Shown here in pieces: positions 1-55,475 of a stretch of DNA of 64,000 bases (within the stretch, counting starts at the first letter, position 1; every line of letters starts with the position of its first letter). The notes beneath the pieces are model-generated. The model ran no database searches and was not told the DNA's origin. It was given only the letters and a program-made list of their open reading frames with translations. Source of the DNA: Azolla caroliniana. Taxonomy: Eukaryota; Plantae; Polypodiophyta. Position numbers and translations under genes: made by a program. Location of the stretch: contig JBHGNT010000006.1 in the NCBI GenBank assembly GCA_043228905.1, positions 6,014,001 to 6,078,000 on the forward strand, in the 5' to 3' direction.

Positions 1-513
1 TTATGAGTAACACATTAGTTAGCTACTAGTAAAAGACACTCTATGTACTAAAGTATGATTAAAATCCTATGACCAAACATGTAAACAATTGTCAACGTCA
101 AAGCAACACTTACATGTACTTACATCCGGAATTAATCCACCAAGTAGAGAATGCAACAAGCATAATATCTTTTTTTACATTCTCATGATCGGCTCTACTC
201 AATTTCTTCTACCATGACTATAAAATTCAATAGGTGGTGTATTCCATTGTACGTTGTTGGTTGGTTGAGTTTCACCAAACCTTCAATCAAGTGGTAGTAG
301 TTCGGAAATTTACTCAATACAATTGTAACCAACACTAGACAAAAGTTTCTTCCTCACGATTAGTGCACATTTCGAAAACCAAGGAAAAATGTTTTCATTT
401 ATAATATAACTCACTGTGGCTTAACAATAGCTTAGAAGGCAGTTCAAATAATGTCTTTGCTCTTTGAGAAAATTCATGAATAGCTTAGAAAGCCTTGTTT
501 TCCTACCTCTACC

Positions 514-758
514 GGAGTGAAAATATGGCATTGAACTCAACTCCTACAAATATGGGAAGATTGTTACAATTAGTGTGATCAATTGTTAATTTAATGTGAC
601 ATTCTTATATTTAACTTTTGTGTTATTGTTGAGCTCAAATCCTTGTTCTCTTACCACTATTGGAGTGAAAATATGGCATTGAACTCAACTCCAATAAAAT
701 GGCAAGATTGTTACCAATAGTGTAATCAACTATTGATTTAATATGATGTTCTTATATG
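514..758. repeat. Diverged direct repeat, ~97-bp copies (514-610, 662-758)
   Basis: Both copies read GGAGTGAAAATATGGCATTGAACTCAACTCC...TTCTTATAT; spacing ~148 bp. Confidence 0.85.
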
Positions 759-889
759 TAATGTGCATGTTATTTTGATGTGGACTTCACGAAGCAATTT
801 GGAGGTTTTTGACAAGGATGAGTGATGATGGTGTGGGGGGCGAAGCATAAGCTCATGAGGAGAGGAGAAAATTGACTTAATGTGTTGTT

Positions 890-1095
890 GTATGACAGGA
901 AGTTGGTGGTAATCGACGAGATGGTTGATGTGGAAAGAGGAAGCATATTGGTTGAGTTGACAATATAATGTATTGGATCACCTTCCAATTTGTGATGTAT
1001 AGGAAGTTGGTAGTAACTAGCGAGATTGTTGATGTGGAAAGAGGAAGCATATTTGTTGAGTTGACAATATAATGTATTAGATCACCTTCAAATCT
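890..1095. repeat. Tandem duplication, ~102-bp unit x2
   Basis: AGGAAGTTGGT...GATGTGGAAAGAGGAAGCATATT..GTTGAGTTGACAATATAATGTATT.GATCACCTTC occurs twice. Confidence 0.85.
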
Positions 1096-3414
1096 GCAAT
1101 AGACAGGCATGGGATACATTGTTATCTACCTTGAAAGTTTCTAGTAGCATTGGGGGTTTTTTTGGATAAAGATTATGTTGTACAGGAGCAAGTTGAAGAA
1201 GTATTGAAAGGTTCATAACTATGACATGCGAGGGCTTGTTTCTGAATATAAGTACTTTGGTTGTTGTCTATGGATATGATACCTTGCATTGTGTCTAAGG
1301 AATAGCTTACAATTAATGGATTATTTTCTCTATTTTGGATTTGTTTCTTCAACCATTGTCTTTCATAAGACGGGCTTGGGGGAAAAAACTTTGTATGTTG
1401 TAGCTGTTATGACCCTTTTTATACAACTAATGGAAGGATATTTGTTTTGGAAAAAATTTGCATGTTATTACCAAGCTCGAATTTACAATGATGTATTCAA
1501 ATTATTGAATGGTGTTTTGCAATGTGGTAGTTGAAATCTATGAATTTAACCACTAGCGTTCTAGTTTAGCAATTTGGGATTACAACTATCTTGATTATTT
1601 TCTTTAATAATGCCCAATTATGTTCATATTCAACACACTTTTACTTGCATCATTTTACCTTGCCAATCACAACAACTAAACTTGAAAAAAAAACTATGAG
1701 TTTTGATGTAATTAGCAAAATGTTGCACTCTTACTCTATTAAACAAAGGTGTATAGTCAGCTTTACTACTTAACACATGTTGCCTTTAAAAGAACGTTGT
1801 ATCAATTAAACCCTTTAGTTCACAATATTATAACCTAACCTTTGATATTATTCCTTCAAACATTAACCAATATCATTGTACCCTTTTTATGTTTTGAATG
1901 GTGCTAACGCATTCCTAACACCGCGTAAAAGAGTATGGGTACGGTGAGGAAGGTTGTTTTAAGGTGTGTTTATGCCAAGATATAAGAGGTCATATTCTTA
2001 ATGAGTTTAAATATTGAAAGGTAAGCAACTCTAAGGGGATATAAAAAGATAAGCATTTAAAGAATCTTATTACAACTACCTTTAAAGTAAAAAGAATTGA
2101 TACAATCATACATGTCTCCAATTTCTCATGTTCTCATCTATTAAGTCAAAACAATGAATTCTACAATAGGAATTTTGATATCCGAGGACCTAAACTCCTT
2201 GTTTTCTCTAGGTACATATGGTTGACTAAGTTGTCACTAGCCACAAGCATAGATATAAGGAAGTTAAGAAGCTCATAACCTTTTTTGAGTTGGATATTCC
2301 TCTTTCCCCTACACTAGCTTCGTATCAAGGAAAAGTTGAAGAAAACACATCTCAATATATCAAGTCAATTGCACCAACCACAATTTATTTTTTGCCTTCA
2401 ACCCACAAATGATGTTCACCGATTTAAGCCATTAATGCCCAATTTAGAGTTAAGCACGAGAGAAAACTAGTCCAAATTCTAGATTTTCACATGGTAAAAA
2501 CTCAAGTCGAGATGCATTTATGGTCCAATGTGGAAAAGGTGAAACGCCACACAATGTCATCTAGAGCTACAAAATCGCATCATTTCATTGCCAACACAAT
2601 TTTTGACTAGTTAGAAGTGATGTTGCCAATTGAATCATGATTGGCAGGTCTATGTTGATATGGAACATTTGTGTGGCATTAACTTGCTATTATTTATGTG
2701 GGAATGACAAATTTGTTTTTGGCGGTTGTTGGCTAGACTTCCCTTAATGCCAGTTTGTTATTGTTACAATTACATACTTATCATTCTCAAAGTAAAGATC
2801 ATTTATTGGCATGACAATCTATGTGGTGTCAATTGGTCATCATTTATGTAAGCAGACAATTCCGTTGGCCTTTATGTTTATTCCATCCTCTCCCGAATGT
2901 AACCATTCTTGGTCTCTGGATTCACTTGTCGCTCCAAGAAGTGAAAAGCTTTTCTCTTGTCCCTCACATCAATTTTGGGAGTTGTCCCGACTCGGCCCAG
3001 ATCCTTGGGACCCGTATATTCAATGACCAAGCCTCCGAGGTTGATGATGTCCCTTGTGTCCTTCACATATTTCATGGTTACAATTTCATTAAGATATGCA
3101 TTGGTCAATGACACTCTAAAAGTTTCCCACTAGTTCATATGGGTGCTAAACAATTAAAGAGCAAATATTTCAATCGTAAACCCAACAATGTAAAATAACC
3201 ACCAAGAACAAGTTGCATGATGTTACAGATGGGCGTGGTGATGCCCAAGGTGTTGGCGTTTAGGGCATTTAGTTGTTGTACATGAAGATGTTGATGGAGG
3301 AGGCAAAATATGGCTATATCGTGCTATCAAGATACAATCCTATACACCTTCAGAATCAGCCCATCTTTTCCCCTTTTCACACTTTTAAAGTACATGTATG
3401 TAAATACATATATT

Positions 3415-3692
3415 TGTTAAGAATATGGAGCCGGCCACAACCGGGTAAGAAGCAGAAATGAGAGAGAACAAGAAAACCCAAAAAATGAAGAATAGAGACA
3501 CAAGATTTTAACATGGAAAACCCAGAATGGGAAAAAAACCACGAGAGCCCATAGAATCACAGAATCACTATGTAGATGAGTATACAAGAGACTCAATGGC
3601 AACAACCTCGAGCTCATCTTTGTCTTATAGACATATACACACAGTGATTACAACACTCTATTCAAACAATGTCATTCATGCATATACAGATG

Positions 3693-3723
<31 letters not shown>

Positions 3724-3840
3724 GGGGTGAAAACACACAATTATATTAATAAATGTGTGTAAAAAACACTACTTACAATGGGTGTGACCATGAAGTATAG
3801 TCACCCACTAACTACACTACACTACATGGGTAGTGGAACA
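3415..3840 (-). mobile_element. Copia-type LTR remnant
   Basis: The minus strand has CGTGGTTTTTTTCCC..GGGTTTTCCATG, GGTTGTGGCC and a terminal ...TTCTTAACA. The same motifs occur in the same order in the solo LTR at 63188-63768. The other boundary is uncertain and no TSD was found. Confidence 0.6.
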
Positions 3841-3959
3841 CGTTGAATTGCCAATAGGCAAGACGAACATTCCACCGAGGAAAGGATTTCCACTTGCTCC
3901 AATAAAGAAAATTGTCACATTAGTACTCCCTTCAACTTTCGTAGATATGCTTTCACTCC

Positions 3960-4430
3960 ATGTCTACCATCGAATACAAAAGCATAGCGCATATTCCAAT
4001 TATGACACAATCCCCAATATCTCAAAAATAGAAAAACAATCTCCATCTCTGACTTTGGGTCCACCTGTGTAAAATTGTGCAAACACCCACTGTCTAGGTG
4101 TCATATAACACCGTGGTAAAACTTGTCAAATTTGAGAAATGTAACTCCAAATCTGAGAAGTAATCGGGCATTGTATAAATCGATGAGTACTATCTTCCAT
4201 TTGAACAGTGCAAAAAAAGCAATTACCCGTTGCTAGTCCACGACGCTTTAGAGCTAATCCCAAAGGCAATCCTCCAATCAAAACTCTCCAAATGAAGACC
4301 TTTGCTACAAGTGGCAATTTAGAATGCCAACTACGTTGTAAGATTTGCCACCACCCATGATTAGATTTGTGTAATCTCCATTCTTCTTCAACCTTAGATG
4401 ATAACCATCCAAGAGACTCAACAGAGCAAT
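3960..4430 (-). mobile_element. L1-type LINE 3' fragment (zf-RVT zinc-binding domain), degenerate
   Basis: WHSKLPLVAKVFIWRVLIGGLPLGLALKRRG...CFFC...EDSTHRFIQC..SQIW matches the plant L1 zf-RVT pattern. A stop and frameshifts follow. Confidence 0.85.
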
Positions 4431-4465
4431 GATACAAAAGATTTGTAGTCACTTGTAACAACGAT

Positions 4466-4496
<31 letters not shown>

Positions 4497-4674
4497 GCAG
4501 CTCGCCTCCGGTCGAATTGGCCGAGTCGGCTCCTAGCTAAGCCGGCTCTCATACTTGTCTGGCTCACAATTGGACTGGCCGATTTCCATCCGATTCCTAG
4601 CCGGATAGGTTCTCCACCCATCATGAGGGACCTCTTCTACACTACAATATTTGTGACATTGTTGGCACGAAATT

Positions 4675-5260
4675 AATAGATTTTTTTGGGGGGCATCCAT
4701 GGTCCATTCACACACAAAGTGTGTCATTAGAAACAATAACATTACAAGAGGAGAGAAAGAGATTATGTAGAACCTAGGAAAGGGTTTTGTGTCCCTAGAA
4801 TGTCAAAGGGGACACGAACAAAAACATTATTCATAAGTGTAAAAGCCAACAATTTGGCTCTTCCTATCGTCCTGTTCACATTCCCACATTAGGCTAGAGA
4901 GATTTCTCTTCTCTCTTGTTGGTTTGTGCGAAGAGCTTTACTCTAAGCATTATAGGAATCTCTTGTAGTTAGAAAAGTTGGCATTAAATTAATAGAAAAG
5001 AAAATTGGGTGTCCATGGTCCATTCACACACATAAAGTGTGTTGTTAGAAACAATAACATTACAAGAGGAGAAAGAGAAAGAAAGAAAGAAATATTAACG
5101 TCTCTTCCTATTCATAACTGTAAAAACCCAACAATTTGGCTCGTCCTATCTTCTTGTTCACATTCCCACATAAGGCTAGAGAGATTTCTCTTCTCTCTTG
5201 CTGGTTGGTGCTAAGAGCTTTACTCTATGCATTATATGAATCTCTTGTAGTTAGAAAAGT
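4675..5260. repeat. ~300-bp diverged tandem duplication, probably TE-derived
   Basis: CCATGGTCCATTCACACAC...AGAAACAATAACATTACAAGAGGAGA and ...GGCTAGAGAGATTTCTCTTCTCTCTTG...GAATCTCTTGTAGTTAGAAAAGT each occur twice. Confidence 0.8.
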
Positions 5261-19437: not shown

Positions 19438-20453
19438 TTAGCAATCAACGTTGTATCTAGAGCAACATTATTCTGAAAGAGGACATGCATTACTTTGATC
19501 TTGTTTGTATTGATTTATTTTTATTATGCTTATGGTATGGGCCCTCTATATAGCTGAATTGAGTGAAGCATTTTAGAGAACAGTGTATGTAATTGCTGAA
19601 TTGACATGATGGAAGAGAAAGGATGCACCAAGCTAAGCAAGATCAATAGCTGAGGTTAACTAGTTTTTTACTGATGAATGCCATCAAGATTCACACATGG
19701 AAATGGAGGTTAGAAGAGACTGATCAACCATTAATCAAAATTATATCGTATTCATATCTGAACTGGGAATGTTTACATAGTAGGACGTGCAGCAACACTA
19801 TTTACGTTGAAGTTTCTGAAATTCTGCTGCTGCTGCTTTTAAATGTAAAACGACAGTGCAGTAATTTACTAATGTTGAATAACAAGCACGTGATCAATCA
19901 AGCTACTCAATGTGAGAACCTGGGGAACTGTAGAGGACCTAAAACTGAATACAAGAAAACTGAATTACATTGTGATTTGAACAACCTGAGCCTGTGGGCA
20001 GAAGTGATTTTTTACACCAGCAGCCTTACCATCAATTAAGGATCCCTACCCAAAGATTCTATGTGCATTTCGTTAGGGTTACTTGATGGGGAGTAGTTTC
20101 GAGATTATGAATATATCATTTAATTAATTAATAGGTTTGATTAACAAGATGTAAATGTGTACAGTTATGGGATGGGTACCTTTGTAGAAAAGCTCTGAGA
20201 ATATATATGCCAAAGACAACCTTTGTCATTGAAAAGATGGCAGTGTGTCAAATATCTTCTAAAATTTATTTTCTTGAAAGAAAAAATGCCACTCTCAATC
20301 AAAGATGGCGATGTATATGTCAAATACCACTCTTTAAATTTTGTTTTCTTGAAAGAAAATGCCACACTCCCAATCCTTTTACTGCCCAACGAGAAAAAAT
20401 GGCAGCAAAGAAGTTAAACTCTGGATCAAAAGAATATCTCAATGAGTGCCATG

Positions 20454-23400
20454 TTACACGCTCCTATCTACATTTACCAGGTGCCTGGCTAAAAGCTCTT
20501 CTGCTCTTCTAGCAACTAATGAAATCTTAGCAAATTCATTGGGTTCAGTGATATAATTTGATACTTGATCACAAGCCAAACTGACCAAATTTGCGAATTT
20601 CATTGCATTTTGTAGCTTCTGTGCCACTTCACCATCCTTGCTGATCATCATATTAAAACCCACTGTTCCAGGTTTTCCTCTTGCCCATGTATACACCATA
20701 CTCCCAAATGCTGGATTCAAATGTAATGGTGGATCATATGACCCCTGCAAGGCCGCCACTTGTTTCCTCAGCATTTCTAGGTTCAAGAAGACATCTTTGA
20801 GAGGTTTTGTGATTCTATATAGGGATTCTCTTGGGTCATTGAAAAGATTCTCCGCTTCGAGTTCAGATGGCATCAATGTGGCCAAAATGCCAGCAAATTC
20901 AGCTGGCAAAAGGTTCTTCATAGAAGTGCATGTTAGGACCACAGCTAACCATAATGCGTTATCCACATTCTGAAGCCTTGAAATTAACATTCCTAGAGGC
21001 TTAAGCCGTGCATGATGTACATCATTAGCATCACTATCATCATCACGAACCATAGAGATTGCATCCACTTTTTCCATTATGTTTAATAGCTTCAATGCTT
21101 CTTTCCATGTTTTGCTTCCAGTCACACTTTCATTCCCAAGTAGAAATGCATCTTTTTTCAGTTCAGGTATATAAAGTTTATTACTATTACTACCCTGTTC
21201 AGTTTGATTATCAGGAAGTTGCAAGCTTCTCTTTTCTTCAATCAGATTTGAGATTTTTGCTTCCAAAATGTTGATTTCTCTTCTGAGGTGTAGCCCTTCC
21301 CTTACCACATCACATTGAACTGGATAGTCCATTAGCAATTTGACATACATTTTGGTTTGCGAATTTCCACTTGCAACATACCCACATGCCCCTCTATGTT
21401 CTACTTTCCAGCTGTCCTTGGGAGGTACTACAGGGGGATGCAGTACCGATCCAGTTGATTTCTTGTAAAGAATATCAAGAGGAAGCATCTCTTTTACATA
21501 CACATGGTCAAGAGCACCAGCAGGTAGCAGCCGAAAGTTGTTATCTGCTCCAAGAACCATGTATAATGACTCAACCTGACCTGGAACACAAGCAATAAGG
21601 AAGGCAGGGAAAGTGCTGCCTGTTTGTGAGGCTGAATGAATAGTCATTCTTATATCAACACGTGTAAACATGGCTGCATCTAAGAGCTTTTGTTTGTTTA
21701 CTTCTGTCAACCCTTGAAACAACTTCACCTCCATATCAGCCTTCACCTCCAAGCACCTAAGGATTTGTAAATCTAGATCTTGCACCTTTTTGTTCTTCAC
21801 ATCTGCGGCATAATATACAAAGTCATGATAACTACTCTCCAATATTGTTTTTACTTGAGAAAGACTGTATTTTGCTACCAGATTTGCAACCAGAGAATAT
21901 GATGGCTTGTGAGTAGACATCATTTTAAAGCTATTATTCAGGACCACGTATGCTACCTCTTTGGGGCCAGAGTAGAAATTTTCCAAGAACAACACATTCC
22001 CTTCAATATCATAACCCCTTCTACCTGCACTTCCAAACAATTGCAAGGCTCGATGACAGGGGATAGGGTGAACTCCATCTTTTGTAGCTTTACATATTGC
22101 TGGCAAAATGATTGTCCGAGCCACAATCCCAGTATGTAATAAAGTATTATCTGTAACAATAAGAAGTTTGAGGATATTCTTTTGGAATAAATCAAGGACA
22201 AAGTTTTGCCATAAAGGCATTTTGCCTTCATGACACATTGCAAAACCCTTGCGAAGAGCTTTAAGTTCTTTTTCATCAATGTGTTCTAATAGGCCAGGAA
22301 CATATTGTGCAAGTTTGTCTATACTCGCCTCTAGTTCAGCAAGGTCTTGCTGGGAAAGTAGTCCCTCTCCGAGAGCTATAAGGGCATCTTCCATCCCTTC
22401 ACTGCATTCTTTAACAGAGAAAAAAACCAACACAGCTGGCAGCATTGCATTCTCTTCAAGCAAACCAAGAGCATTCTTCAAACTTGGCCTATCATAGCCA
22501 ACCCAGAAAAAGGAATCTTGTTGTTCTTTGGTCATGGAATTGTCATAACCTCCATTGGATTCAGAGAATGTATTATTTAGTTGTCTGCCCTTTGTATCAA
22601 GAAGCGGCTTCAATGCTGACCCACAGCAATAGAAAAATCTTCTCAGGACAGGCTCTGATTTGTAGCAAATAAGCTTACAAGCTCCCTTTTTCTTGCCCAT
22701 CCAAGACACAACCTGTTCCTCATTGGACGATGGCAATGTAAGTGCAATGACGCTGATTTTAGGATCCATGAGCATCAATACTTGCTCCCACAGTCTATTA
22801 TAGCTTTGTTCACTGAATGTGTGAAACTTATCTAGTACAACCAAGTTTACATCCTCAAAGAAAGAGCCATATTCGGAAGTGCCAGGGCCATTGAGCTCTT
22901 GGATAATTTCAGCAAGAGATTCCAAGGTTAGGACTATCAATTTCTCACCCTTGTGAATTCTCTTTCTTGCCCATATGCCACCCACATTGCTACGACCATA
23001 GATAGTTTGTAGGCTAAGGAACTTTTGTTTTGCAAGATATTCATATGGAGTGATAAACAAGGTGCGGCACTCAAAAATTATATTTTTATAAAGGCAAAAG
23101 TCGGCCGCAACAGACTTGCCAGAACCGCCAGAAGCAGACACGAGCACAGAGCTCCCGTCTTGCACATATTTAAAGACCTCTTTTTGCCATGACTCTAATC
23201 TAATGCCCATCAATGCCTCATAAGTATCCTCATCAATATCCAAATCACATGATTTTGCATGTTTTATTGCTGATATAGCATCTTCATACTTCTTGTTGCC
23301 CACAAGTCTCTTTACATCTTGAAGAAGCCGTGTTTTTTGGACTCCTTTTCTATCAGATATCAACAGATCTGCCCCATTTGTCAGCTGTGTAGAATCATTT

Positions 23401-24560
23401 CTCCCTGCTATCTTCCTTTCTGCCATTTCAGACATTCCACCAGTGATGAACTTGGGCTCCTCGGATATTCCACCACCAGATGCCTTTTTAGTTGAAAACC
23501 TTGAGACTCTAGTGCTCTCTTCAATCATCCTCATACCTTTGAGATTGTCATCAACATGCTCTATGGTTATCTGATTGCGGATAGGCCAATTACTTGAATT
23601 CTCAACAGTGCCCCTATCCATGAAGTCATTATTCCTCTGATCTCCCTCTGTCTTCTTTCCGGTTCTAATGGAACTTTGCATGTCAAATGTGGACTTATGT
23701 TTCTTTCCTACTGCCTCAAAGAGTCTGCTTATTGCATAATCTGTGCTCTCATCAATTTCATCACTATGTTTGAGCTCATTGAGGACAGATTCCCTTGCTT
23801 CCATCATGTGTTGACCTTGCAAATTTCTTCCTCTTACATGGGTTGTTTCTCTAGCCACACCATGTGAAGAAAACCATTTCGATGCTCTCTCATCTCCTGT
23901 CTTTATAACTTGCATGCTATGATTTCTCTCTGATTGTAACCGCTTTATTTCTACTTTGCCTTGTAATACCTCCCCTTCTTCAGAGTTCAATTTCTTTGCA
24001 TTGTTCCATTTTTGCAAAAGCTCAAGCAACATATGGGAACTTTTAGAACTCTCTTCTCTTCTCTTCATGAATGTACTATCTAACAGTTTTGATCCATTAT
24101 GTGTTGAAAGTCTAGATTGCACTCCATTATAAGAACTCATTTGATTGCTCTCTAATCTTGAAATCCCCAGCTGATTTCTATTTGTTATACCTTCTCCTTT
24201 TCTCCATACCCGTTTCTGCAACGCTCCAGGTGTTTTGAATTTTGGGTATCCTATCCCCATATCTTCTTTATAGGACTCCTCAACCATATCTAGCTTTCTT
24301 GACCTATCCGAATTGGAGTCTTCTTTGTATTTGTTCAGAAATGGAGCTCTACCATTGAATGAGGGTGGGTAGGTTCCATTAACAAAGCTCTTGAGTTCGT
24401 CTGTTGGATATACATGATCAAAAGAAAAGTTCTCATCCACATTATAATGATCATCTCCACTTGGGATATCCTTATCATTATTCCCATTGCCTACTGTATG
24501 TTCTTCGAGGTCTGGTAGGGCAGGATCATTAACAAGGACATTACTGATTCCATCATCATT

Positions 24561-24596
<36 letters not shown>

Positions 24597-25562
24597 TTGT
24601 TCTTCTTCCTCGAGTTCTTCATTGATGACATCTTCTTCATTAATGGTATCTTCTTCGTCATCATCAGTAACCTCCTCATTTTCATCCCCATCTTCTTGCT
24701 CTTGTTCTTTATCATCAATGACAACTTCTCCCTCGTCTATGAATTCCCTACCAATATAAACCTCATCTGGTATATCATCAGAAAAACGAACTCTGTGCAG
24801 AAGACCATCATCACCTTCACCATCATCGTCGATGTCATCATCACAATCATCATCATCTATATCAGCGAAACCAACACCTACATCAACATCATCATTGACC
24901 TCTGCTTCTAGGTTCTTCTCCTTTTCCTTAACCATGCTTAATAAAACCCTAACAACATCAGGGTTCTGGAACCCAAAATGCCTAGCACCTTGAACGTGAT
25001 GCACACCATATACTTTCACAACTTTGTTCCAAACCTTCTGAGGAGATTCTGCATGGAAAACGGCATTATTACCACTCGTGCTATTAGTAGTACTACTATC
25101 CATCAAAATTTCTTCAACTACAAAAACAGGTCCATTCAAGCCCTCTTCTATACTCTGCCTATACAACCGGCCCTTGTAAGTCTTAGTGGAAATGTACCCT
25201 ATAGGATAAGGGTAGCTTCTGCTTGAGTTCCAATATAACTTAGATTTATTATCTCTTAAATCACCCGTGTTATAGATTTCCCCCCATCTCTCTATAGTCA
25301 GAGATGTGTTTGCATGATAAGGTAAATCATATGTATTTGAAGAAACTTCATCTTTCCTTAAGGAATTGTGTTCCGTGATGCTGAGTTTCTGTCGCTCTGT
25401 TCTTGTTATCTTGTTTCTGATATGAAAGTGTAGAGAAAAAAGCTTCCTTCTTGAAGGTAGGAGGAAGGAATTACATCTTTTGTGTAGGAATGCAGAGCTC
25501 GGTCGAAGTGGACATGGGTATGGTGAGAATGGGTGGTAAAACTGTAAGGTTGTGCTGGCCAT
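20454..25562 (-). CDS. Intronless 1702-aa protein: putative plastid transit peptide + FYR domain + acidic tract + ISE2/Ski2-like DExH helicase body with degenerate motifs + DSHCT-like C-terminus
   Basis: Uninterrupted 5.1-kb ORF. The N-terminal ~50 aa are rich in S/P/F/R and lack acidic residues. aa ~80-212 are FYR-like (SLTIERWGEI, YPIGY, GPVFVV, SPQKVW, HFGFQNPDV). The helicase part is colinear with ISE2 (GSSVLVSASGGSGKS, VVLDKFH, PLLDTKG, MLPAVLVFFS, PLWQNFVLDLFQ, AGRRGYD, SYSLVANLVA). C-terminal LGMLISRLQNVDNALWLAVVL...PAEFAGILATL is DSHCT-like. Confidence 0.9.
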
Positions 25563-27566: not shown

Positions 27567-29794
<2,228 letters not shown>

Positions 29795-36493: not shown

Positions 36494-39400
36494 ATGGAGA
36501 CTAGAAGAGGATGGCCTTGGAAAAAGAAATTTAGTGAGAAGATTGCACTTGCTTCTCCTGAATTGAGACAAAACAATGAGCATTTGGTAAAATAATTTTG
36601 TCTCCATTATTTTCCCCTCATTGTAAGATATTTTGATATGAATGTAACAACTAAGCAATCATCCTAATCACACGGCCTAGTTTTTTTCCCAGCCTACAGA
36701 TGAGAGATTTGATGATCACATGTGTTTCTTTTGACGACACTTTATAGTTTTCGCAATGTTCTCATTAAACTTAATTATACTGAATTACATTGCTCTTTTA
36801 TCATTAGAAAAAGATGTCATCCCTAATTAAATGTGCTTTTACTAATTGATGTTCATGTGCTTATTTAATATCACATCAAATTTATGCCCTACAAGTAGAA
36901 GAACTACATCAAAACCTTTCTATTTCGACTGAAATAGATGAAATGCAAGTGCATGTTAGATAGAATTAGATGGAATGACTTTTACTTTGAAATTCTCTTA
37001 GATTGAAATGAAATTAATGCCAAATTACTCCCAGATTTACATAGTTTGAGACAACCTAATTGTCGAATTATTTGAATTGAAATGTCTCTTCTTCCTTAGA
37101 TAAGCCTGTCCAAACATTATTGTCTTTTATTAGGACCCCAACATACAATTCAAGGACCAATCTGAAAAGGAGGGCATGAATCTCTTACAACAAGCAGAGG
37201 CCAAAATTGAAGAACTTGCTAAACAGCTTTATACGAAGGACGAGATGATCTTGCAACATGCCAAAGTATCCGAAGAGGCAATTTTAGGTACAAATCAATT
37301 GTGTTAATGCTAGACAGAGTAAGCTTACTATTGGATGTAAGTCTTTTTGAGGAATTTTGACGTAGAACAAAAATGCCGATATAAAGATCATAAAGTACCA
37401 TATACATGTTAGGATCGTTTTGGATTGCATTAATATTGGGCCATATACGGTTTTCCAATGAGATTTGCGGTTATAAAACGAAAGCATTGATGTACGCATT
37501 GGAACGTGCATAATCATATAAAGCTCAAGAATGCCAGGGAGAGCTCAACATTGCACAAATAAACTGAGAAATCCCACCAAAGCTCAACCGCTGACTATAA
37601 TTCACAATAAGTTTTTAGGCATTCATCTTGTGTGAGAAAGAGCCCAATCCCCTCATAATTCTAAGATTTCTTGTGTCTATGATATGAAACATGCTTAAAT
37701 AATTAAAGATCAAATAAATTTTTTTAAATCCACCTTTTTCTATTTTACAATTGCAGGATGGGAAAAGGCCGAGTCTGAGATTACCAACATCCAACAAGAG
37801 CTCAATGCGGAGACCCACAAGCGGCTTGCAACAGAGGATCGTGTTTCACAGTTGCAGAGCACATTGAGGGAATACATGGATCAGCTCCAAAATCTCCAAG
37901 AGCAACAAGAGGAGAAGATACATGACATGGTGCTCAAAAAAACAAGAGAATGGGAAAAAGTATGCGAAGAGTCGCAAGAGAAGATCAATAAGCTTAAAAA
38001 CGATCTCTTAGCAGCAGAAGCAGAGAATTTTGCAATGAATGAGTTGCTCCAAGAAAAGGCTAAGTCCATCGAAGAAGCTAAAGAAGCTAGAAATAGAGTT
38101 GAAGAGGAGGTTAAATTACTACAAATTAAGCTCGAATCCACAGAGAAGAACCTAACAAACTGGAAATACGAGATGTATTTAATTAGGAAGGAATTAGACA
38201 TACGGAATGAGGAGCTCAGAAATAGCAAGAAGATATCAGAGGTCGCTAACAAGCAACATCTCAAGCACATGAAGATAATTGCTAAGCTTGAATCAGAGTG
38301 TGAACGCATGCAGCTTTTTGTTCGAAAAAAGCTGCAAGGATCTGATGTCCTAGCTCAGACAAGAATAGAGTTAGGGTCAGGGTTGAACCCAGAACAAGGT
38401 CGACAAAGGACACCAAGAATTAACCAAAACAAGCAAGATCAAGGATTGGTTAATTTAAGAAATTTGGGTTGTGATACGGACGGCTCTGATCACCCAAATT
38501 TGGCAATGGTTGATGAAGAAAAGGCATTAAGAGAGCTCCTCTATAGAAGCAAGGGAGAGCACAAAGATGTAAGAATGGTTTGTACTAGGCTCTCTTCAAA
38601 GCAAGTGGATCAAAGAAGATCAAACCTAGTATCAAGATTTAATGGTATTGGTAAATTCAAAGGCCATACTAACAATTTCTCGAGTGAGGACCATAACATC
38701 ACATACAACGAAGAGCTGAGTGTCATATCTATTTTCAAGGATGGAATCGTGCATAATGAAAACAATGGTTTAGAATCGTGGGCTAATGCTCTTGAGTCTG
38801 AGCTAGCACGATTGAACAAAAAGAAGTGCCCTACTAGCTCTATCTCGGATATAACCATGCAATCACCACGTTCTTTTGAATTGATGGACGATTTTGCTGA
38901 AATGGAGAAATTTGCATCGATGTCTGATCTTCACAAAGATTTAGAACTTGACGTGCAAAGTCATATAGTTTTAGATCAAGGGTCAGATGTGGTAACAAAG
39001 AATCTATGCCATCAGTTGCCTACTGGTGTCTCTAATTGCCAATCAGAAGAGAGTATTTCCAAACAAGATGTGTCGTTAGAGGCAATAAATGGAAAAGAAA
39101 CTAGTCGAGAATTGGCCTTAGCAATGAACAAGGTGGTTAGTCTCATCGAAGTGCTGTCACAATATAACTATAATGCAGAAAATGGTCTTAATGAGACAAT
39201 TTCTTATAAGCAAAACCATGTCCTTACAAGCTCAGAGTTCAAATCTTGTGTCCAAAGCCTCATCACTCTATGCAATTGTGTCTTGCATGATAAAGTGGAC
39301 ATTATGGACTTTCTTGCTGAAGTGGCATCTGCTCTAGACTGGATACTGAATTACACTTTCTCCTTAAATGGTCCTCAAATAACAAATGTGCAAATAAGCA

Positions 39401-41067
39401 ATCTGAGATCAGGTTGTGATAGTAAAAAAACCACACTGGAAGAAAGATATCCTCATGATATTCATGATCACAAAACCATTTGCAGTGATGTGGACATTAC
39501 AAGGTTTCATAGCCTTGAAAAGCAGTTGAAATTGGAGAAAGATGCTACCAAGGAGAAATGGGCTCTATTGAAAGAAGAGGTTGCAGTATTAAAAGCTCGA
39601 CTAGAGGTATCAAGCATAAATGCAGCTGAATTGAAATCTGGTCTTTCTTCAGCTATGGAAACCAAAGGGTCTCTTATGATTGATATGGAAAAATTTGTAG
39701 CCTTGACGAATGAACTTGTGTCGCACCTTTCTGATGCCAAAGAAGATCTAAAGAAACTTGAGGTGCAATTTTTTTCTTTAGAATTTCTGCTCCAAGATTA
39801 TGTACAATGCAACAAAGATGTCAAGATAATGCATCAAGACCTCTTCGATAGACAATCTCGTTCAACAGGGTAACATAAACACCATGTTACGTAATTCTGT
39901 AGGTAGAAGGTAACTAGTTTTTAATGTTTCTATAATTTTCTATGGTGCTCTCAGGGAAACCGATTCTAAAATTGCACATAACAGAGTGACACTGCCTCAA
40001 ACATCTACAGAGAGCTCAACGACAAAGAAGGAGAAGGTATAGAAGTCATAACATTTTAACATGTTTTCCAATATTTGAAAGTAGGCTAAGGAGCTCATTT
40101 TATCAACCACACTCAAATCATCACCATAAAGCCATCAAAATTGGCTGACCAATGGCCACCCAATTGCTTATAATTCTACAATATGCTTAACTACCCCGTA
40201 TAATGTGGTTGTGTGTATGCTAATAACAAAAGTCTCAAGGGCTCCATGGTTGTAACTTATAGGATCTTGGGTTTCGATTAGTTCCCCACAAAGAATGTGT
40301 ATGAAGTTTGAGAAAATCCATCCTACACTTCTTCTATATCAAAATACCATATTCTTTTTTGACAAAAACTCTGGAGTACCACTCTAGACTTTTTATTTCG
40401 CCCAAACGCCCCTAGGTTTTCTTCATTTGGTGAAATTCTCTGGTAGGGAAAACTCCAAAAAACCTGTGAGCATTTTCTTTATTTATCACAATGCCGCTAC
40501 GTACCTCTTATTTCCCCAAATATCCATGTCGAATCAAAAACTAAGGGCACTTGGTGAAAAAATGTTCATCTTTTCCATTGCTAGAACTAAAGTAGTTCCT
40601 TTTACGATGATGATGAATGACAGGAAAAATGCATGGAGGCAACCACAAAGAAGCTAGAAGAATGCCATAGCACTGTACTTTCCATCGAGAAACAACTAAA
40701 TGATCTAGGAGAAGCATCGGATAATCTCACACAAAATTCTCCATACACAAGATCTCCGTTGAATAACCCAAAAACTCATAAGACTTTAAAAACTATAATT
40801 GATTATGACGACCATGAAGATCATGTAAAAATGGTAGGAAATCATGAGAGCATACCACAATCAATAAACCATGGAAATCAAAATGTGTTTGTTTCTTCTC
40901 CATCTCCTGGGAGGTTCTTAAGTCTAGAAGCTTGGGAGAACCAAGAAGCATTTCCTCCATGTTCTCCTTCCATCTCTGCAGCAAAGAAACGTGAAAATGG
41001 TGCGAAAGGGTTAGGCAGATTCTTCACCAAGAACAGGGTATCTAAAACCCTGAAACCCCTAAATTGA
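36494..41067 (+). CDS. FPP: Filament-like plant protein (DUF869, FPP4/5/6-like coiled coil), 961 aa, 5 exons
   Basis: Exons 36494-36586, 37134-37287, 37757-39869, 39955-40036, 40624-41067 (2886 nt, in frame). FPP motifs METRRGWPWKKK, QHAKVSEEAILGWEKAE, IAKLESECERMQLFVRKKL, SWANALESEL, LMDDFAEMEKFA, KLEECHSTVLSIEKQL. Confidence 0.92.
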
Positions 41068-41356: not shown

Positions 41357-43954
41357 AAACTTGGAGCGATACATGTTCTTATAGGACTATTTGAGGCTAA
41401 AGAGTCTTTGTAGGAGTCCACATATGGGGAGAAAACATAACATCGAGCTCAAGCACGCCCACTTAGTGCAAGAGTTTTTCTCTACCAGTAGATTGGGTCC
41501 ACATGGTATCAATTGTTTGGCTTTTTATTTTCTTATCTAGTTAGGTGATGGATAGATTGCCCCTAAAGAGATCGATTATGGTTTTGGGCCTCCTTCATTT
41601 GGAAAGGTGAGAGGCCTATATAGGGTTTCAAACAATTGCCTTCTTTCTACTTATGGATTAATGCATCCTATAAGAAAGATGCTACATATGTATATGCATA
41701 ATACAATGATGTTATTTTTTTAAATATTAATGACTTACACTTTTACCTCACATAGTGAGGGCAAGTTATTTGAGACTACCATGCAAGGACACTTAAATGT
41801 GAACATATTTCTTATTATAAGCAAAGACGTCACAATAAAATTTCCATTTGTTTTTAATTTGAAAGGACACAATGAATCAAACATATATCTTTTGTTATTT
41901 GGTTAACATACATCCTCAAGTTCTAGCAAAAATAAGCACAAATTGTTAATCCATTACTTAGATTCAAAGCTCTACAAATCATGAAAGCTCCAATAAACCA
42001 CCAAAGTCAATGGCAATGCAATGTCCTAGGCATAAATGCATCGCCATCAATTTTGAAGCCTCTTGATTCCATCTATTGTAATCTCATATGTTTTAGATCA
42101 TGATTTCAACAATATTTCTTATTCCCACCTTGCCTTTATTAGTTGCACCTTTTGCCATTGACTAATGAGGGAGCAAGGAAAGTAGGAAACTACCTCAACC
42201 TTGTGGTCCTTCATACTTTGATCTTCTACAAGACATGACAAGAAATCTCTTTATAAACACATGCTCGTGCATGCGACTAGGTATCATTGTTGGTTGGGAC
42301 TCATGCATAGTATATGCACATTACTCACCAAACAATCACACATGTAGTACGTCAGCAACGCTTCACCATGCCTTGGTTGCGCCATTGTTCAATGTTCTTT
42401 TGGGAGATTCCCAATAGTTCCAACTAATCCCATTCTATTGGCACTTGTCCTCTCCCTAGTTGATGTTAATGTATCATCATCGTCATTTGTACCAAATCAC
42501 CAAATGATTGTTAACTGATACTTGCCATTCTAGATTCTTGTGCTTGGTTTACATGAATAAAAATGTAACCTCTTGTAAATGCCTATCCAAAAAGGCCAAG
42601 TGGCTATCTACAATGCATTTTAAGCAATTAAAGTCCATTGGACTACGTATGCATGCAAATTGGGTGGAGTGCAAAATTCCATGAATCTTTGCACTTGCTT
42701 TTGCGTGATACACAATAAAGATGAAAAAGGAGTGCAACAACAAGATTCACACGAAGTATATGCAAAGAAAGGAAATATCTCGAAATTAAAGTACTACCAT
42801 CGCTAGCCTATGGATATGATTTTAGCTTGACATCATAGAGTTATGCGTTGGCTTCCATACAAAATATTGAAACAAGATTTGTATACATTAAAAGATAAAA
42901 AGAGGTTCAAACTTCCAGAAGATCCATCCGAAGGTTTTGCTTGGTATACCCACCCATCAACATAAACCGAAGGTGAAGGCGCAAGATTTTGGAGATGGTC
43001 GGATTCGTAGTTGCATTTGTGTCCAAACCACAAGAAATAAGACAAAAAAAAGATGTGGAGGAGAGCCAATGTTTAAACAGGAAATGAGATGTGTGACAAA
43101 GGATTTGTTCGGAGCTCTACCCCACGAAGTTTTCAAAAGTTATGACGAATACCTTTAGGCATACACAAGAGTATCGATTTGGTGATCAATTTTATGTCCA
43201 TAATAGCCATGTTTGGATGTACTTGTAAAAGCTTTATACATATTGCCGAGGGGTATAACGTGTAATTAATTGAAAATTGGGGGGTATTATTTGTGAAGTC
43301 ATGAAACTTATAGAGGCGTCTGTGGCTGTTTTTGTCTTAGAAATAGCAAAATCGAAGAACAGAAAGATAAAGAGTGTCAGATTATAGATATATATTGTTT
43401 CCTTATAAGTTATAATCAATCGTTTGTGTAGATTATTAGGGTTTCCTCATCTGTTACGATTCACGAAACAAACGATTTCCTTTCTCAACAGATTTGTGTT
43501 TAAAGTTCTCATAGAAAGAGATGGATTTTTGCAGGGATTCGATGTCTTTCATGTGAAGAAAGGTCAGGCAAAGTATTTCGGGCTTCTGAGGTTTTTTTTT
43601 TCATATAAAGAGAGATCATCAAAAGATTAGGTTTCTGGTCACTTTTTTTGCGTGCAAAGAAAGACAAGGCAAAAAATTATGTTTTTTTCATATAAGAAGA
43701 AAGAGAGAACAGGTAAGGCAAAAATATCGAGTTTTGATTCTAGTTGTGAACTGTAAAGAAAGGTAAGGAGAAGTTTTAGATTTCTGAGACTTTTCTTCAT
43801 CTAGGAAGAGATATAAATATGTATAAGAGAACTTTCTCGTATAGAGAAAGATCAGGCAGATTTTAGGTTTCTCAGATGTTTTTCATGTAAGAAAAATTAC
43901 AAAAGAGAAATTTGGGGTTCTAATTTTGTGTTCTAAGAGAGATTGAGAAGTTTC

Positions 43955-45067
43955 ATGTCTCTGCCCAAAGATATACTAGAGAACATTTTTTGCCGCCTTC
44001 TGGTGACTGACATTGCCCGATCCCGAGTTGTATGTGAATCATGGAGATCTTTACTTTCTTCCGAAGATTTCTTGGTTAGATATAAGATTTCCAATGATGA
44101 AAAGTGGGTAGCTGTTTTTGATGAGAATGGTCTAAATAAGGAAAGAATGCTAATCTTGTACAATGCATCTTTAAAGACATGGCATCATGTCTCACTTTGC
44201 TTTCTTCCAAATGAATTCACTTATGCTGTGGCTTCCTCTGGTGGTTTGCTATGTGTTGCTGGACAACCTAATGGGAAAAATGTACTATGCGTTTGCAATC
44301 CCTTCACAAGATGCTATAAAGTACTACCAGAGTTGGATCAGGAACCCTCTATACCAGTTGTAGTCATGATAGAAAGCAAAAAAAGTCACACAGAAAGAGG
44401 AAAAGACCATGAAAAGAAAAGGAGCATGGGTGCCCATTTTCAGATACTTGCTTTGCGAGGAGATGTGGTGGCTCTTTACTCTACAAAACACGGGAATTGG
44501 CAAGCTTTTAACACTGGGTTACCCTATAGGCCGAGGAGCCCGGTGGCATGTGAAGGTATTGTATATGGTTTGCAAAATATGGGTTCTCCATGGAAATCTA
44601 GTTGGAGACTTGTATATGCGAAGCTCAATGAGTTTTGTTGCAAGGAAGTATGGTGTGCTATCAATAGACCTGAGTGGGGTGAAATACTAGATATTTTGCG
44701 GCAACCTCGGCTATTAGAATCAAATAACTCTCTATTGTTAACTGGTGGATTGCGACGAGGAGTGGCTAATTTTTGCTCTACTTTCATTATACTAAAGCTG
44801 GATTTGATCTCCCTTGAGTGGAGTGAAGCTCAGAGGATGCCTTATGCTTTCTATAAGCATTTTGATCCTGGGGCTGATTTTAAGATATTCGGAGGACGAG
44901 GGATGGTTTATTTCTCGAGCAAGAATCCAGGGAATCTTGTTGTGTGTGATCTCTCGGGAAGTGGAGATAGGATATGGAGTTGGGTTGAGGGATGCCCTTC
45001 AAACTATCAAAAGAATGGCCTGTGTAAAGGTTTTCCTCTAAAGCCAAGATTTGATATATTTCCTTAG
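43955..45067 (+). CDS. SKIP15: F-box protein, SKP1-interacting partner 15-like, 370 aa, intronless CDS
   Basis: F-box LPKDILENIFCRL...VCESW. SKIP15-like motifs CNPFTR.YKVLP.L, LPYRPRSPV, GSPWKSSWRL, EWGEILDILRQPRLL, LILKLDL.SLEW-type IILKLDLISLEW, FKIFGG, GLCKGF. First ATG at 43955; an upstream exon cannot be excluded. Confidence 0.88.
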   Translation: MSLPKDILENIFCRLLVTDIARSRVVCESWRSLLSSEDFLVRYKISNDEKWVAVFDENGLNKERMLILYNASLKTWHHVSLCFLPNEFTYAVASSGGLLCVAGQPNGKNVLCVCNPFTRCYKVLPELDQEPSIPVVVMIESKKSHTERGKDHEKKRSMGAHFQILALRGDVVALYSTKHGNWQAFNTGLPYRPRSPVACEGIVYGLQNMGSPWKSSWRLVYAKLNEFCCKEVWCAINRPEWGEILDILRQPRLLESNNSLLLTGGLRRGVANFCSTFIILKLDLISLEWSEAQRMPYAFYKHFDPGADFKIFGGRGMVYFSSKNPGNLVVCDLSGSGDRIWSWVEGCPSNYQKNGLCKGFPLKPRFDIFP

Positions 45068-53615: not shown

Positions 53616-55475
53616 ATTTGTTGACTAAGCCAAACAAACGAATGAATCCTAATTATCCTTGGAGCGATGAGTCCACACACTAAACATTCTACAGTCTTAA
53701 GACCAAGTGAAGCTAAATATGGATATAGCACTGATTCCAAATACAATTGACTTATTTTCATCTTTCATTCTCGGAACCATACTGATTTTGGTAGTGTCTA
53801 CTGTCAAGACCACTGTGGTAAATGTGAGTATTTTTTGGAGTGTAAAGACCACAGTGCAGTAAATGTGAGTCTATAGATATAACTATTTGTGTAAGTTGAA
53901 CCAAAAGATGATAGAATTTGATGTCCCTTCTTTGATGCAAATGCAAACACCAAATTTAATTATGAGATTGTCGAGATTGTCATCTATTTACATCCGTGTA
54001 CTAACTATTTGGTTAGTTTTAATATATGTGCTATGAAATAAATTCAATGTGCTTATTGTGTTATTATCATTCTGACTGACATGTTTGTCTAAAATATTTC
54101 ATATCTAAATCTAAAATAATGTGGTGGAGAAGTTGGTACTCTTAACAACCTACATAACATCTTACATTGCCCTTAATGTTAAATGTATATATATGTATAT
54201 AGTCACGCATTTTGATATTTTGATGACTGTTAATCCATGTTGATAAGTGTGTTTTGGGATCACCATGAAATGCATAATTAATCTAAGAATCAGAGCCTTG
54301 AGCATAATAATGTTTCATGTTCAAGCCAAACCTTTCCGATAACAAAATAATACATAGGTTATTTATTATGATCGAGCTAAAATCCTTACAATAATAAAAT
54401 ATTTCATATGTTACACAAAATTCTTCCAAAAATTAAATAATCGATATGTTACTCTAACGGGAAACTCACTAACACTTATACAAATGGGGACAACTTAGAG
54501 ATAATGAACTGACATTATATTTGTCAATGATGATCCCATAGCTGTCATGTCCAATCACCTTTATGTATGATCGACCCTTATCAGCTTAATGCCAAACGTT
54601 TCTAATTTGAAACATGATGATAATCATCTTTGTAGTCAATTTGATTGTAGGGAACTCAAAAAGTACTTGTTTCAAGGTTCCCCTTGGTTAGGTTACTCGA
54701 AGACAAAATGGACATTAAAGACACGAGAGGGTTAGACATGTTTGTTAAATGCCTATTCCCTCATGATTAGTTAGGGTTTGGTCTCACCATCCAGGAGTAT
54801 GAAGGTGCTTCTTTGGGGAGCTTTTCCTCAATGTGCTAGCCAAAAATTGTTTAAATGAAGATATTCGGCTTCGACTAGTGTGCACAATTTGTGTTGCGAT
54901 ATGTTAAGAATCAATTGAATATAAATGTGCTCGATGTGTGGAGCCTTGGTAGAGGAGGAGTATATATAATAATATACCAATTGCACTCGGTGCACGAAGC
55001 GCCCCAAGCGCAAAAGTATACCACGACCGTAATGCCGAGCTCGTTATTTGGGCAATCAAAATGGGCTCTTTGATTGGGAAGGCATTTATACAAAAGGGGA
55101 ATGTGGGGGGGGGTTCCGGCAGAAACATTCTTGCAAAAGAGACAGGGAGGGGAATATGAAAAGAAGAACATCCCATGGGAACTCCCCTTAAAGGGACGAT
55201 GATCAAAGACGAATGAATGGTGGCCAGCTAGATAGTGTCAGTCATTAAGGACACAAGAGCCATTAAACAGTAGAGCAGAAAACGTAAAACAACTGATATT
55301 ATTATGAATAAATATGCCATTAGCAAAAGTTATATATACTGTAGTCTGTATATATATATATATATATATTATTATGAATAAATGATAAATCCCATTCACA
55401 GTTATTATTCTGAGAAGATGGCCCCGGATCATCCACGTTGAACGGACGGACCCGGTGACGGACGTTAACGTCGCA

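Follow-up and report, generated by a model that had tools for sequence, protein, structure and literature searches.

Layout of the FYR-helicase gene

The window analysed here is a 64,000-nucleotide (nt) stretch of the genome of the fern Azolla caroliniana (GenBank assembly GCA_043228905.1, contig JBHGNT010000006.1, positions 6,014,001 to 6,078,000 of the forward strand). On its minus strand, at 20454..25562, lies one unbroken open reading frame (ORF) of 1702 amino acids (aa) that joins an FYR domain to a Ski2-like helicase body. This 5109-nt frame, without an interrupting stop, is the sole ORF of at least 150 aa within 19-27 kb of the window. The ORF list with its translation and colinear contigs of close relatives over 20329-25553 both mark it as a whole intronless coding sequence (CDS) of 1702 codons plus stop. 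An earlier note, made from the letters of the sequence, had listed the 1702-codon ORF, an FYR module, an Asp/Glu tract, a low-complexity stretch and a region colinear with the helicase ISE2, and each was found where that note had placed it.

All features of the gene are on the minus strand. The protein begins with an extension (aa 1-78, 25329..25562) that is basic, rich in Ser/Thr and nearly devoid of acidic residues, and which by its composition is a possible organellar presequence. The first 55 residues contain no Asp or Glu, seven Lys/Arg and 18% Ser/Thr. The N terminus is thus transit-peptide-like, as the note had it, in composition, and the extension is weakly conserved in alignments of the homologues. 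The FYR domain follows (aa 79-215, 24918..25328), then an acidic tract (aa 216-345, 24528..24917), a low-complexity charged linker (aa 346-775, 23238..24527), the RecA1 and RecA2 helicase core (aa 776-1260, 21783..23237) and a C-terminal region with a winged helix, an arch-like stalk bearing a beta-rich (SH3/KOW-like) insertion, and a DSHCT helical bundle (aa 1261-1702, 20457..21782).

The N-terminal module is an FYR domain

When the full-length protein was compared with Pfam, FYRC (PF05965) matched at aa 163-210 with 16.5 bits and FYRN (PF05964) at aa 95-130 with 13.2 bits, both under their thresholds. The excised FYR piece scored 23.0 bits for FYRC (gathering score 21, E=9e-5) and 17.5 bits for FYRN (gathering score 24, E=0.003), with FYRN N-terminal to FYRC and so in the right order. 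Across the family, FYRC matched all five fern members (best E=1.2e-8) and FYRN four of the five, also in the right order (best E=7.6e-4); the protein of Mesostigma viride, a basal streptophyte alga, matched FYRN with E=2.3e-4. A single-sequence search of the PDB with the FYR piece returned nothing significant (TBRG1, E=0.31), and profile and fold searches were required. The best PDB match of a profile built from five N-terminal pieces was the FYR region of KMT2D (E=0.0098). An AlphaFold2 model of aa 72-222 had a predicted local distance difference test score (pLDDT) of 78.9, and Foldseek gave the FYR structure of TBRG1 (2wzo) as its sole significant match (E=1.5e-4, probability 1.00), with template modelling (TM) scores of 0.62/0.64 over 146 columns, the whole chain; the runner-up had E=0.28. 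In language-model features, aa 75-215 adjoin the FYRN and FYRC clusters with a score of 0.93.

These four partly independent lines, namely Pfam matches of the excised piece and throughout the family, the PDB match of the profile, the predicted fold and the language-model features, establish that aa ~79-215 is a genuine FYR domain and uphold the module that had been proposed for aa ~80-212. As in TBRG1, the KMT2/trithorax proteins and the plant JMJ14-type demethylases, FYRN and FYRC are contiguous and form one alpha+beta module. By contrast, identity to these proteins is ~20%, the fern protein has no SET, JmjC, PHD or other chromatin domain, and the partner of its FYR domain is a helicase of organellar lineage.

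The helicase body and its relation to ISE2

In the full protein, Pfam DEAD (aa 792-942, E=5e-14) and DSHCT (aa 1523-1631, E=4e-5) were both over their cut-offs. The best PDB sequence matches of aa 781-1702 were Ski2, FRH and Mtr4 (E~1e-30). In an AlphaFold2 model of aa 775-1702, based on a 34-sequence alignment (pLDDT 83.9), RecA1 and RecA2 are accompanied by a long helical stalk, into which a beta-rich segment is inserted, and by a helical bundle at the C terminus; Foldseek placed Mtr4, FRH and Ski2 on top (~985 columns, E~1e-38). With the support of Pfam, the PDB matches and the model for the core, and of Pfam, hhalign and the modelled secondary structure for the C-terminal region, the fern protein carries a complete Ski2-like helicase body comprising RecA1/RecA2, winged helix and DSHCT bundle. 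Among solved structures, the exosome-associated Mtr4, Ski2 and FRH are closest by sequence and by fold, and share the long-helix stalk, the beta-rich insertion and the DSHCT bundle. They differ from the fern protein in that the latter has no rRNA_proc-arch Pfam domain, has lost the catalytic motif and has a different N-terminal module.

The much-studied helicase ISE2 has effects on splicing, editing, rRNA maturation and plasmodesmal trafficking. A profile of the FYR-helicase family was colinear with a profile of the ISE2 clade over 858 columns (hhalign, probability 100, 23% identity), and the alignment takes in the stretch that forms the SH3 domain of ISE2. Pfam SH3_ISE2 (PF25446) had no match to the fern protein at E<=1, and a jackhmmer search from the ISE2 SH3 domain in the local sequence set reached ISE2 and not the FYR-helicase family. 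The body and order of ISE2 (EMB25/DExH15) are the same, with RecA1, RecA2, insertion domain and DSHCT, and ISE2 also shares, by composition, the presequence-like N terminus. Differences from ISE2 include 21-23% identity, a motif II of DKFH where ISE2 has DEVH, eroded motifs III and V, and the additional FYR domain and ~560-aa disordered linker of the fern protein.

Trees of the helicase core were made with FastTree (145 sequences) and with a quick IQ-TREE search under posterior mean site frequencies (PMSF) for 50 sequences, with support from the Shimodaira-Hasegawa-like approximate likelihood ratio test (SH-aLRT) and Mtr4/Ski2 helicases as the outgroup. The FYR-helicase family was monophyletic (support 100) with Mesostigma basal. 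The same trees contained a green ISE2 clade of angiosperm, Selaginella and Mesostigma proteins (100), a Prochlorococcus-containing clade (98) and a clade of Pyropia and Cyanidium (99). The FYR family, ISE2, and the cyanobacterial and red-algal clades grouped together (97) apart from Mtr4/Ski2, and the order among the four was not recovered. Mesostigma encodes both an FYR-helicase (P0015, 1943 aa, with an intact DEFH) and a separate ISE2 orthologue (P0037). These sequence comparisons indicate that the fern helicase is ISE2-like in architecture and ancestry and that it is not an ISE2 orthologue, belonging instead to a clade of its own. The earlier description of an ISE2-like helicase therefore stands for the colinear architecture and fails for membership of ISE2 itself, since the family lies in a separate, fully supported clade.

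Distribution and age of the fusion

A word-based search with the whole protein recovered four homologues of the same architecture at 47-51% identity: a Pteridium aquilinum transcript, a protein from the Adiantum nelumboides genome and two proteins from Logan contigs. This search scored 8000 candidates, was probably swamped by acidic low-complexity words, and missed the Ceratopteris, lycophyte and liverwort members; our view of the distribution is not based on it. For this, the helicase profile was run exhaustively with hmmsearch against 1.84 billion cluster representatives (50%-identity clusters). The family found in this way contains Ceratopteris richardii, Adiantum capillus-veneris, the lycophyte Diphasiastrum complanatum, the liverwort Calypogeia fissa, a Ginkgo fragment and Mesostigma viride. 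Land-plant members scored 536-1736 bits and the next step down was at 297 bits. Mesostigma lies at about this lower level, amid cyanobacterial, ISE2 and red-algal helicases. A hidden Markov model (HMM) of the fern FYR domain matched the N-terminal regions of the proteins from Calypogeia (1e-33), Diphasiastrum (5e-32) and Mesostigma (2.5e-20), and matched no other Ski2-like protein in the local set of ~180 sequences.

Among seed plants the sole member found was that of Ginkgo (Gb_15475, P0013), a 680-aa C-terminal fragment without the motif II region and without the FYR domain. A search with this fragment gave no more seed-plant members, returning just generic Ski2, Mtr4 and HelY proteins, and a word search with the FYR region found nothing beyond two known ferns. 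No angiosperm, moss or Selaginella member was found in the exhaustive profile search of the cluster representatives. Because the ISE2 proteins of angiosperms and Selaginella are present in that same library, the absence of the family from these plants is meaningful, though short of proof. With no angiosperm member found, the FYR-helicase, unlike ISE2, appears to be without an Arabidopsis counterpart.

Since both modules are homologous across ferns, lycophyte, liverwort and Mesostigma, the fusion arose once, before land plants. The alignments and profiles place it in the early streptophytes. This overturns the suggestion of a lineage-specific fusion, given that other ferns, Diphasiastrum, Calypogeia and Mesostigma have the same architecture and the intronless state alone is specific to ferns.

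There seem to be two old paralogue lineages within the ferns. The A. capillus-veneris protein (P0010, locus L005), which is 36% identical to the window protein, branches outside all other fern copies, including those of its congener A. nelumboides (L002/L006).

Helicase motifs and selection

In superfamily 2 (SF2) enzymes, motif II supplies the catalytic base, its Glu, and RNA binding is coupled to ATP hydrolysis through motifs III and V. Motif II of the window protein (aa 911-914, 22821..22832) is DKFH in place of DExH, so that the catalytic Glu is replaced by Lys. The motif alignment shows DKFH in most fern members as well and DRFH in the liverwort; land-plant members as a whole have DKFH, DKLH, DKFC, DKFF or DRFH, and DEFH is found in Mesostigma only. 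Motif III (SAT) is LLV in Mesostigma versus LTL, LSL or LSG in land-plant members, and motif V is nearer the canonical form in Mesostigma versus eroded in land plants. Other motifs are better kept. Motif I (Walker A; aa 810-817, 23112..23135) retains GKS in the window protein, as it does in Mesostigma and the land-plant members, with GKF in Calypogeia, and its residues G813, G815, K816 and S817 are invariant in all five ferns. The glutamine of the Q-motif is retained, and motif VI (AGRRG) is kept in Mesostigma and land plants alike. Mesostigma is the natural reference for the ancestral, presumably active state.

We estimated the ratio of nonsynonymous to synonymous substitution rates (omega) from the two A. 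nelumboides copies, at a synonymous divergence (dS) of 0.078. It was 0.27 for the whole protein, 0.24 for the FYR domain, 0.26 for the helicase core, 0.43 for the linker and, lowest of all, 0.13 for the C-terminal bundle. Selection on all modules is clearly purifying (omega 0.13-0.43). Over the final 250 codons, the differences listed between the window and its ~97%-identical relatives are 11 synonymous and 12 nonsynonymous.

Because the Glu of motif II is lost and motifs III and V are eroded while selection stays purifying, the land-plant family is probably a conserved pseudo-helicase, as part of the explanation that we favour as a whole. Inert members of SF2 that serve as scaffolds or clamps include the inactive C-terminal cassette of Brr2 and eIF4AIII clamped onto RNA within the exon junction complex. 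The land-plant proteins may resemble these by analogy, in that the fold is kept under selection with hydrolysis absent or blocked; direct homology to them goes no further than the SF2 fold.

Transcripts and gene structure

Contigs from ~97%-identical relatives tile 20329-25553, and no splice joint among them is supported: a single joint was listed, from one contig of low depth (3.7) whose flank measures 21 nt. Upstream of the ATG, contig depth drops from ~55 to ~1. In run X14 a contig stops at 20329 in a loose stretch of T (plus strand), corresponding to the poly(A) of a minus-strand transcript, which gives a 3' untranslated region of 20329..20453 up to the poly(A) site of this relative. The library type of the relatives' runs was guessed as RNA, and these contigs are supportive rather than formal evidence of expression. 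A full-length Pteridium Trinity transcript (ORF 175-5178) and single Logan contigs of 5.0 and 6.2 kb each cover both modules, and provide the transcripts across the FYR-helicase junction that had been called for. The gene is real and transcribed in ferns and, taken with our explanation as a whole, probably functional.

The window gene is intronless, as the earlier note had proposed, and so are the four other fern loci examined. In the two A. nelumboides loci, in Ceratopteris and in the divergent paralogue of A. capillus-veneris, gene length equals CDS length. By contrast, the Calypogeia locus breaks up into at least 25 tblastn blocks within 11 kb, with the FYR domain spread across three of them, and the Diphasiastrum gene spans 136 kb. 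As both fern paralogue lineages are intronless, intron loss preceded the fern duplication. A loss of ~25 introns together on the fern stem would best be accounted for by retroposition. These data suggest that a spliced mRNA was retroposed on the fern stem, with duplication following.

The acidic tract and the linker

The acidic tract, defined by composition, is 51% Asp+Glu, contains a 12-residue acidic run and varies in length among homologues. The contigs of close relatives that tile the gene break only here. Breaks or rearrangements in the assemblies of related species coincide with the acidic-tract repeats at 24547-24613 and 24797-24858, an insertion of 3 nt after 24845 keeps the frame in one relative, and an odd back-joint from 24859 to 24649 occurs in one run. 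These breaks in the Asp/Glu tract indicate length polymorphism or assembly slippage.

Alignments of the linker show a conserved pre-helicase helix region (aa 742-790, extending into the start of the helicase core) and fern-conserved linear motifs. Two short motifs of this kind lie at aa ~505-527 and ~603-621 (in the region of 23700-24050 and 23990-24060 of the window), of the types Leu-Leu-Glu-Leu-Leu-Gln-Lys-Trp-Asn and Asp-Glu-Ser-Thr-Asp-Tyr-Ala-Ile-Ser. Both are near-invariant among ferns and absent from the lycophyte, the liverwort and Mesostigma. We regard them as candidate fern-specific interaction motifs.

Proposed function and location

We think it probable that the locus is a functional, transcribed fern gene from an old, apparently unnamed streptophyte family whose land-plant form is a pseudo-helicase. 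The helicase body is of the cyanobacterium-derived ISE2/HelY type, and the land-plant protein would no longer hydrolyse ATP for RNA unwinding. With the nucleotide pocket and the Ski2-like RNA channel kept, it might act as a static RNA/ATP binder or assembly platform, that is, as a scaffold or clamp and not a motor. The FYR domain may serve as a protein-protein docking module that recruits partners, with the ~560-aa acidic and charged linker as a flexible tether. The sole plant example studied is JMJ14, whose FYRN/FYRC domains bind NAC050/052 (PMC4659397). The fern copy would stem from a retroposed spliced mRNA that replaced its intron-containing parent and was later duplicated.

As to location, the plastid is our preferred guess, slightly more likely than not, because the helicase is kin to the cyanobacterium-derived/ISE2 clade and its N terminus resembles the ISE2 presequence in composition. 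ISE2, the characterised plant member of the clade, is a chloroplast RNA helicase (PMC10940495).

Several points weigh against the interpretation as a whole. The N termini from Ceratopteris, A. capillus-veneris and Calypogeia have early acidic residues and are less presequence-like, a linker that is both acidic and basic also looks nuclear, and FYR domains are otherwise known from nuclear proteins. The label 'cyanobacterial' for one clade of the trees comes from one named member and 'red-algal' from two. Motif II is the sole ground on which ATPase activity would be lost, and Walker A and motif VI are those on which nucleotide binding would be kept. Retroposition is read from the absence of introns only; a poly(A) remnant, target-site duplications or a surviving parental copy would hardly be expected to have persisted from the fern stem onwards. 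The absence from angiosperms, mosses and Selaginella comes from 50%-identity representatives and from word-limited searches.

The alternative that fares best is a nuclear or nucleo-cytoplasmic protein, in which the FYR domain, like those of JMJ14, ATX and TBRG1, docks to chromatin or transcription factors, the dead helicase binds nascent or regulatory RNA and the N terminus is no transit peptide. We consider this appreciably less probable than a plastid location, while giving it some weight. All characterised FYR proteins known to us are nuclear (for JMJ14, PMC4659397), and sequences such as this one, 51% acidic and then mixed K/R/S-rich, are typical of nuclear proteins. In several orthologues the first 6-12 aa already include acidic residues. 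Among solved structures, the fold is nearest to the nuclear/cytoplasmic Mtr4 and Ski2, with no plastid-type structure among the matches listed. In the trees, however, the helicase groups with the cyanobacterial, ISE2 and red-algal clades and not with Mtr4/Ski2. Moreover, an extension of 80-170 aa precedes the FYR domain in all full-length members, and the first 55 aa of the window protein are without an acidic residue, like the presequence of angiosperm ISE2.

It is quite unlikely that the protein is a still-active RNA helicase or translocase that tolerates DKFH as a non-canonical motif II. The retained GKS of Walker A, Q-motif glutamine and motif VI arginines would suit such an enzyme, as would a whole fold predicted with high confidence and a core under purifying selection. 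Against this, all land-plant members have Lys or Arg in place of the catalytic-base Glu, motifs III (SAT) and V are changed too, Calypogeia has GKF in Walker A, and the DEFH of Mesostigma implies that the land-plant change is derived and fixed. We rejected, as very improbable, a decaying processed pseudogene or annotation artefact left open by chance: the lack of introns and the degenerate helicase motifs would fit, but the 5109-nt frame is open, ferns, lycophyte and liverwort share these degenerate motifs without variation, omega is well under 1 and transcripts occur in several species.

Returning to the plastid pseudo-helicase that we prefer, we can extend it speculatively. A nuclear-type FYR domain of the host could have been grafted on an endosymbiont-derived ISE2-like helicase, giving from the origin of land plants an ATPase-dead RNA/protein scaffold for plastid RNA metabolism or plastid-nucleus communication, possibly with dual targeting. 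We hold this fuller scenario to be a doubtful one, less probable than a nuclear location.

No paper describing an FYR-helicase fusion or a sister family of ISE2 came up in full-text literature searches, in line with the earlier note, which knew of no description of the architecture. In databases, members of the family are named 'hypothetical protein' or 'Helicase ATP-binding domain-containing protein'. ISE2 has an unrecognised and equally old related family with a chromatin-type FYR domain; as the trees do not order the four clades, we claim no specific sisterhood. The family would have lost catalysis at about the time land plants arose and been kept from a liverwort to ferns and Ginkgo. If true, this is a natural conversion of a helicase to a scaffold conserved over several hundred million years, and the first FYR domain that we have found outside a recognisable chromatin protein, useful for learning what FYR binds. 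It would also be a clean case of a large retrogene replacing an intron-rich parent in ferns, and the lack of any angiosperm member found would explain why model-plant genetics missed the family. Ceratopteris richardii, with the orthologue KP509_25G043200, is a suitable species for direct functional tests.

Neighbouring genes in the window

The ORFs nearby are those of ordinary plant proteins. Three of them, all on the plus strand, are long single-exon ORFs for a PRISE-type reductase (28796-29794), a filament-like plant protein (37852-39873) and an F-box/KIB1-4 beta-propeller protein (43943-45067); a fourth encodes a TAXi-type aspartyl protease. The starts assigned to the first three are GTG or TTG, which suggests that these are exons of larger genes. 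The TAXi-type protease is a 602-aa single-exon ORF at 55455-57263, also on the plus strand, and is overlapped by a 192-aa antisense ORF that is probably spurious. The one patch of the window that is rich in GC (0.43-0.48 at 54001-58000) holds this protease ORF.

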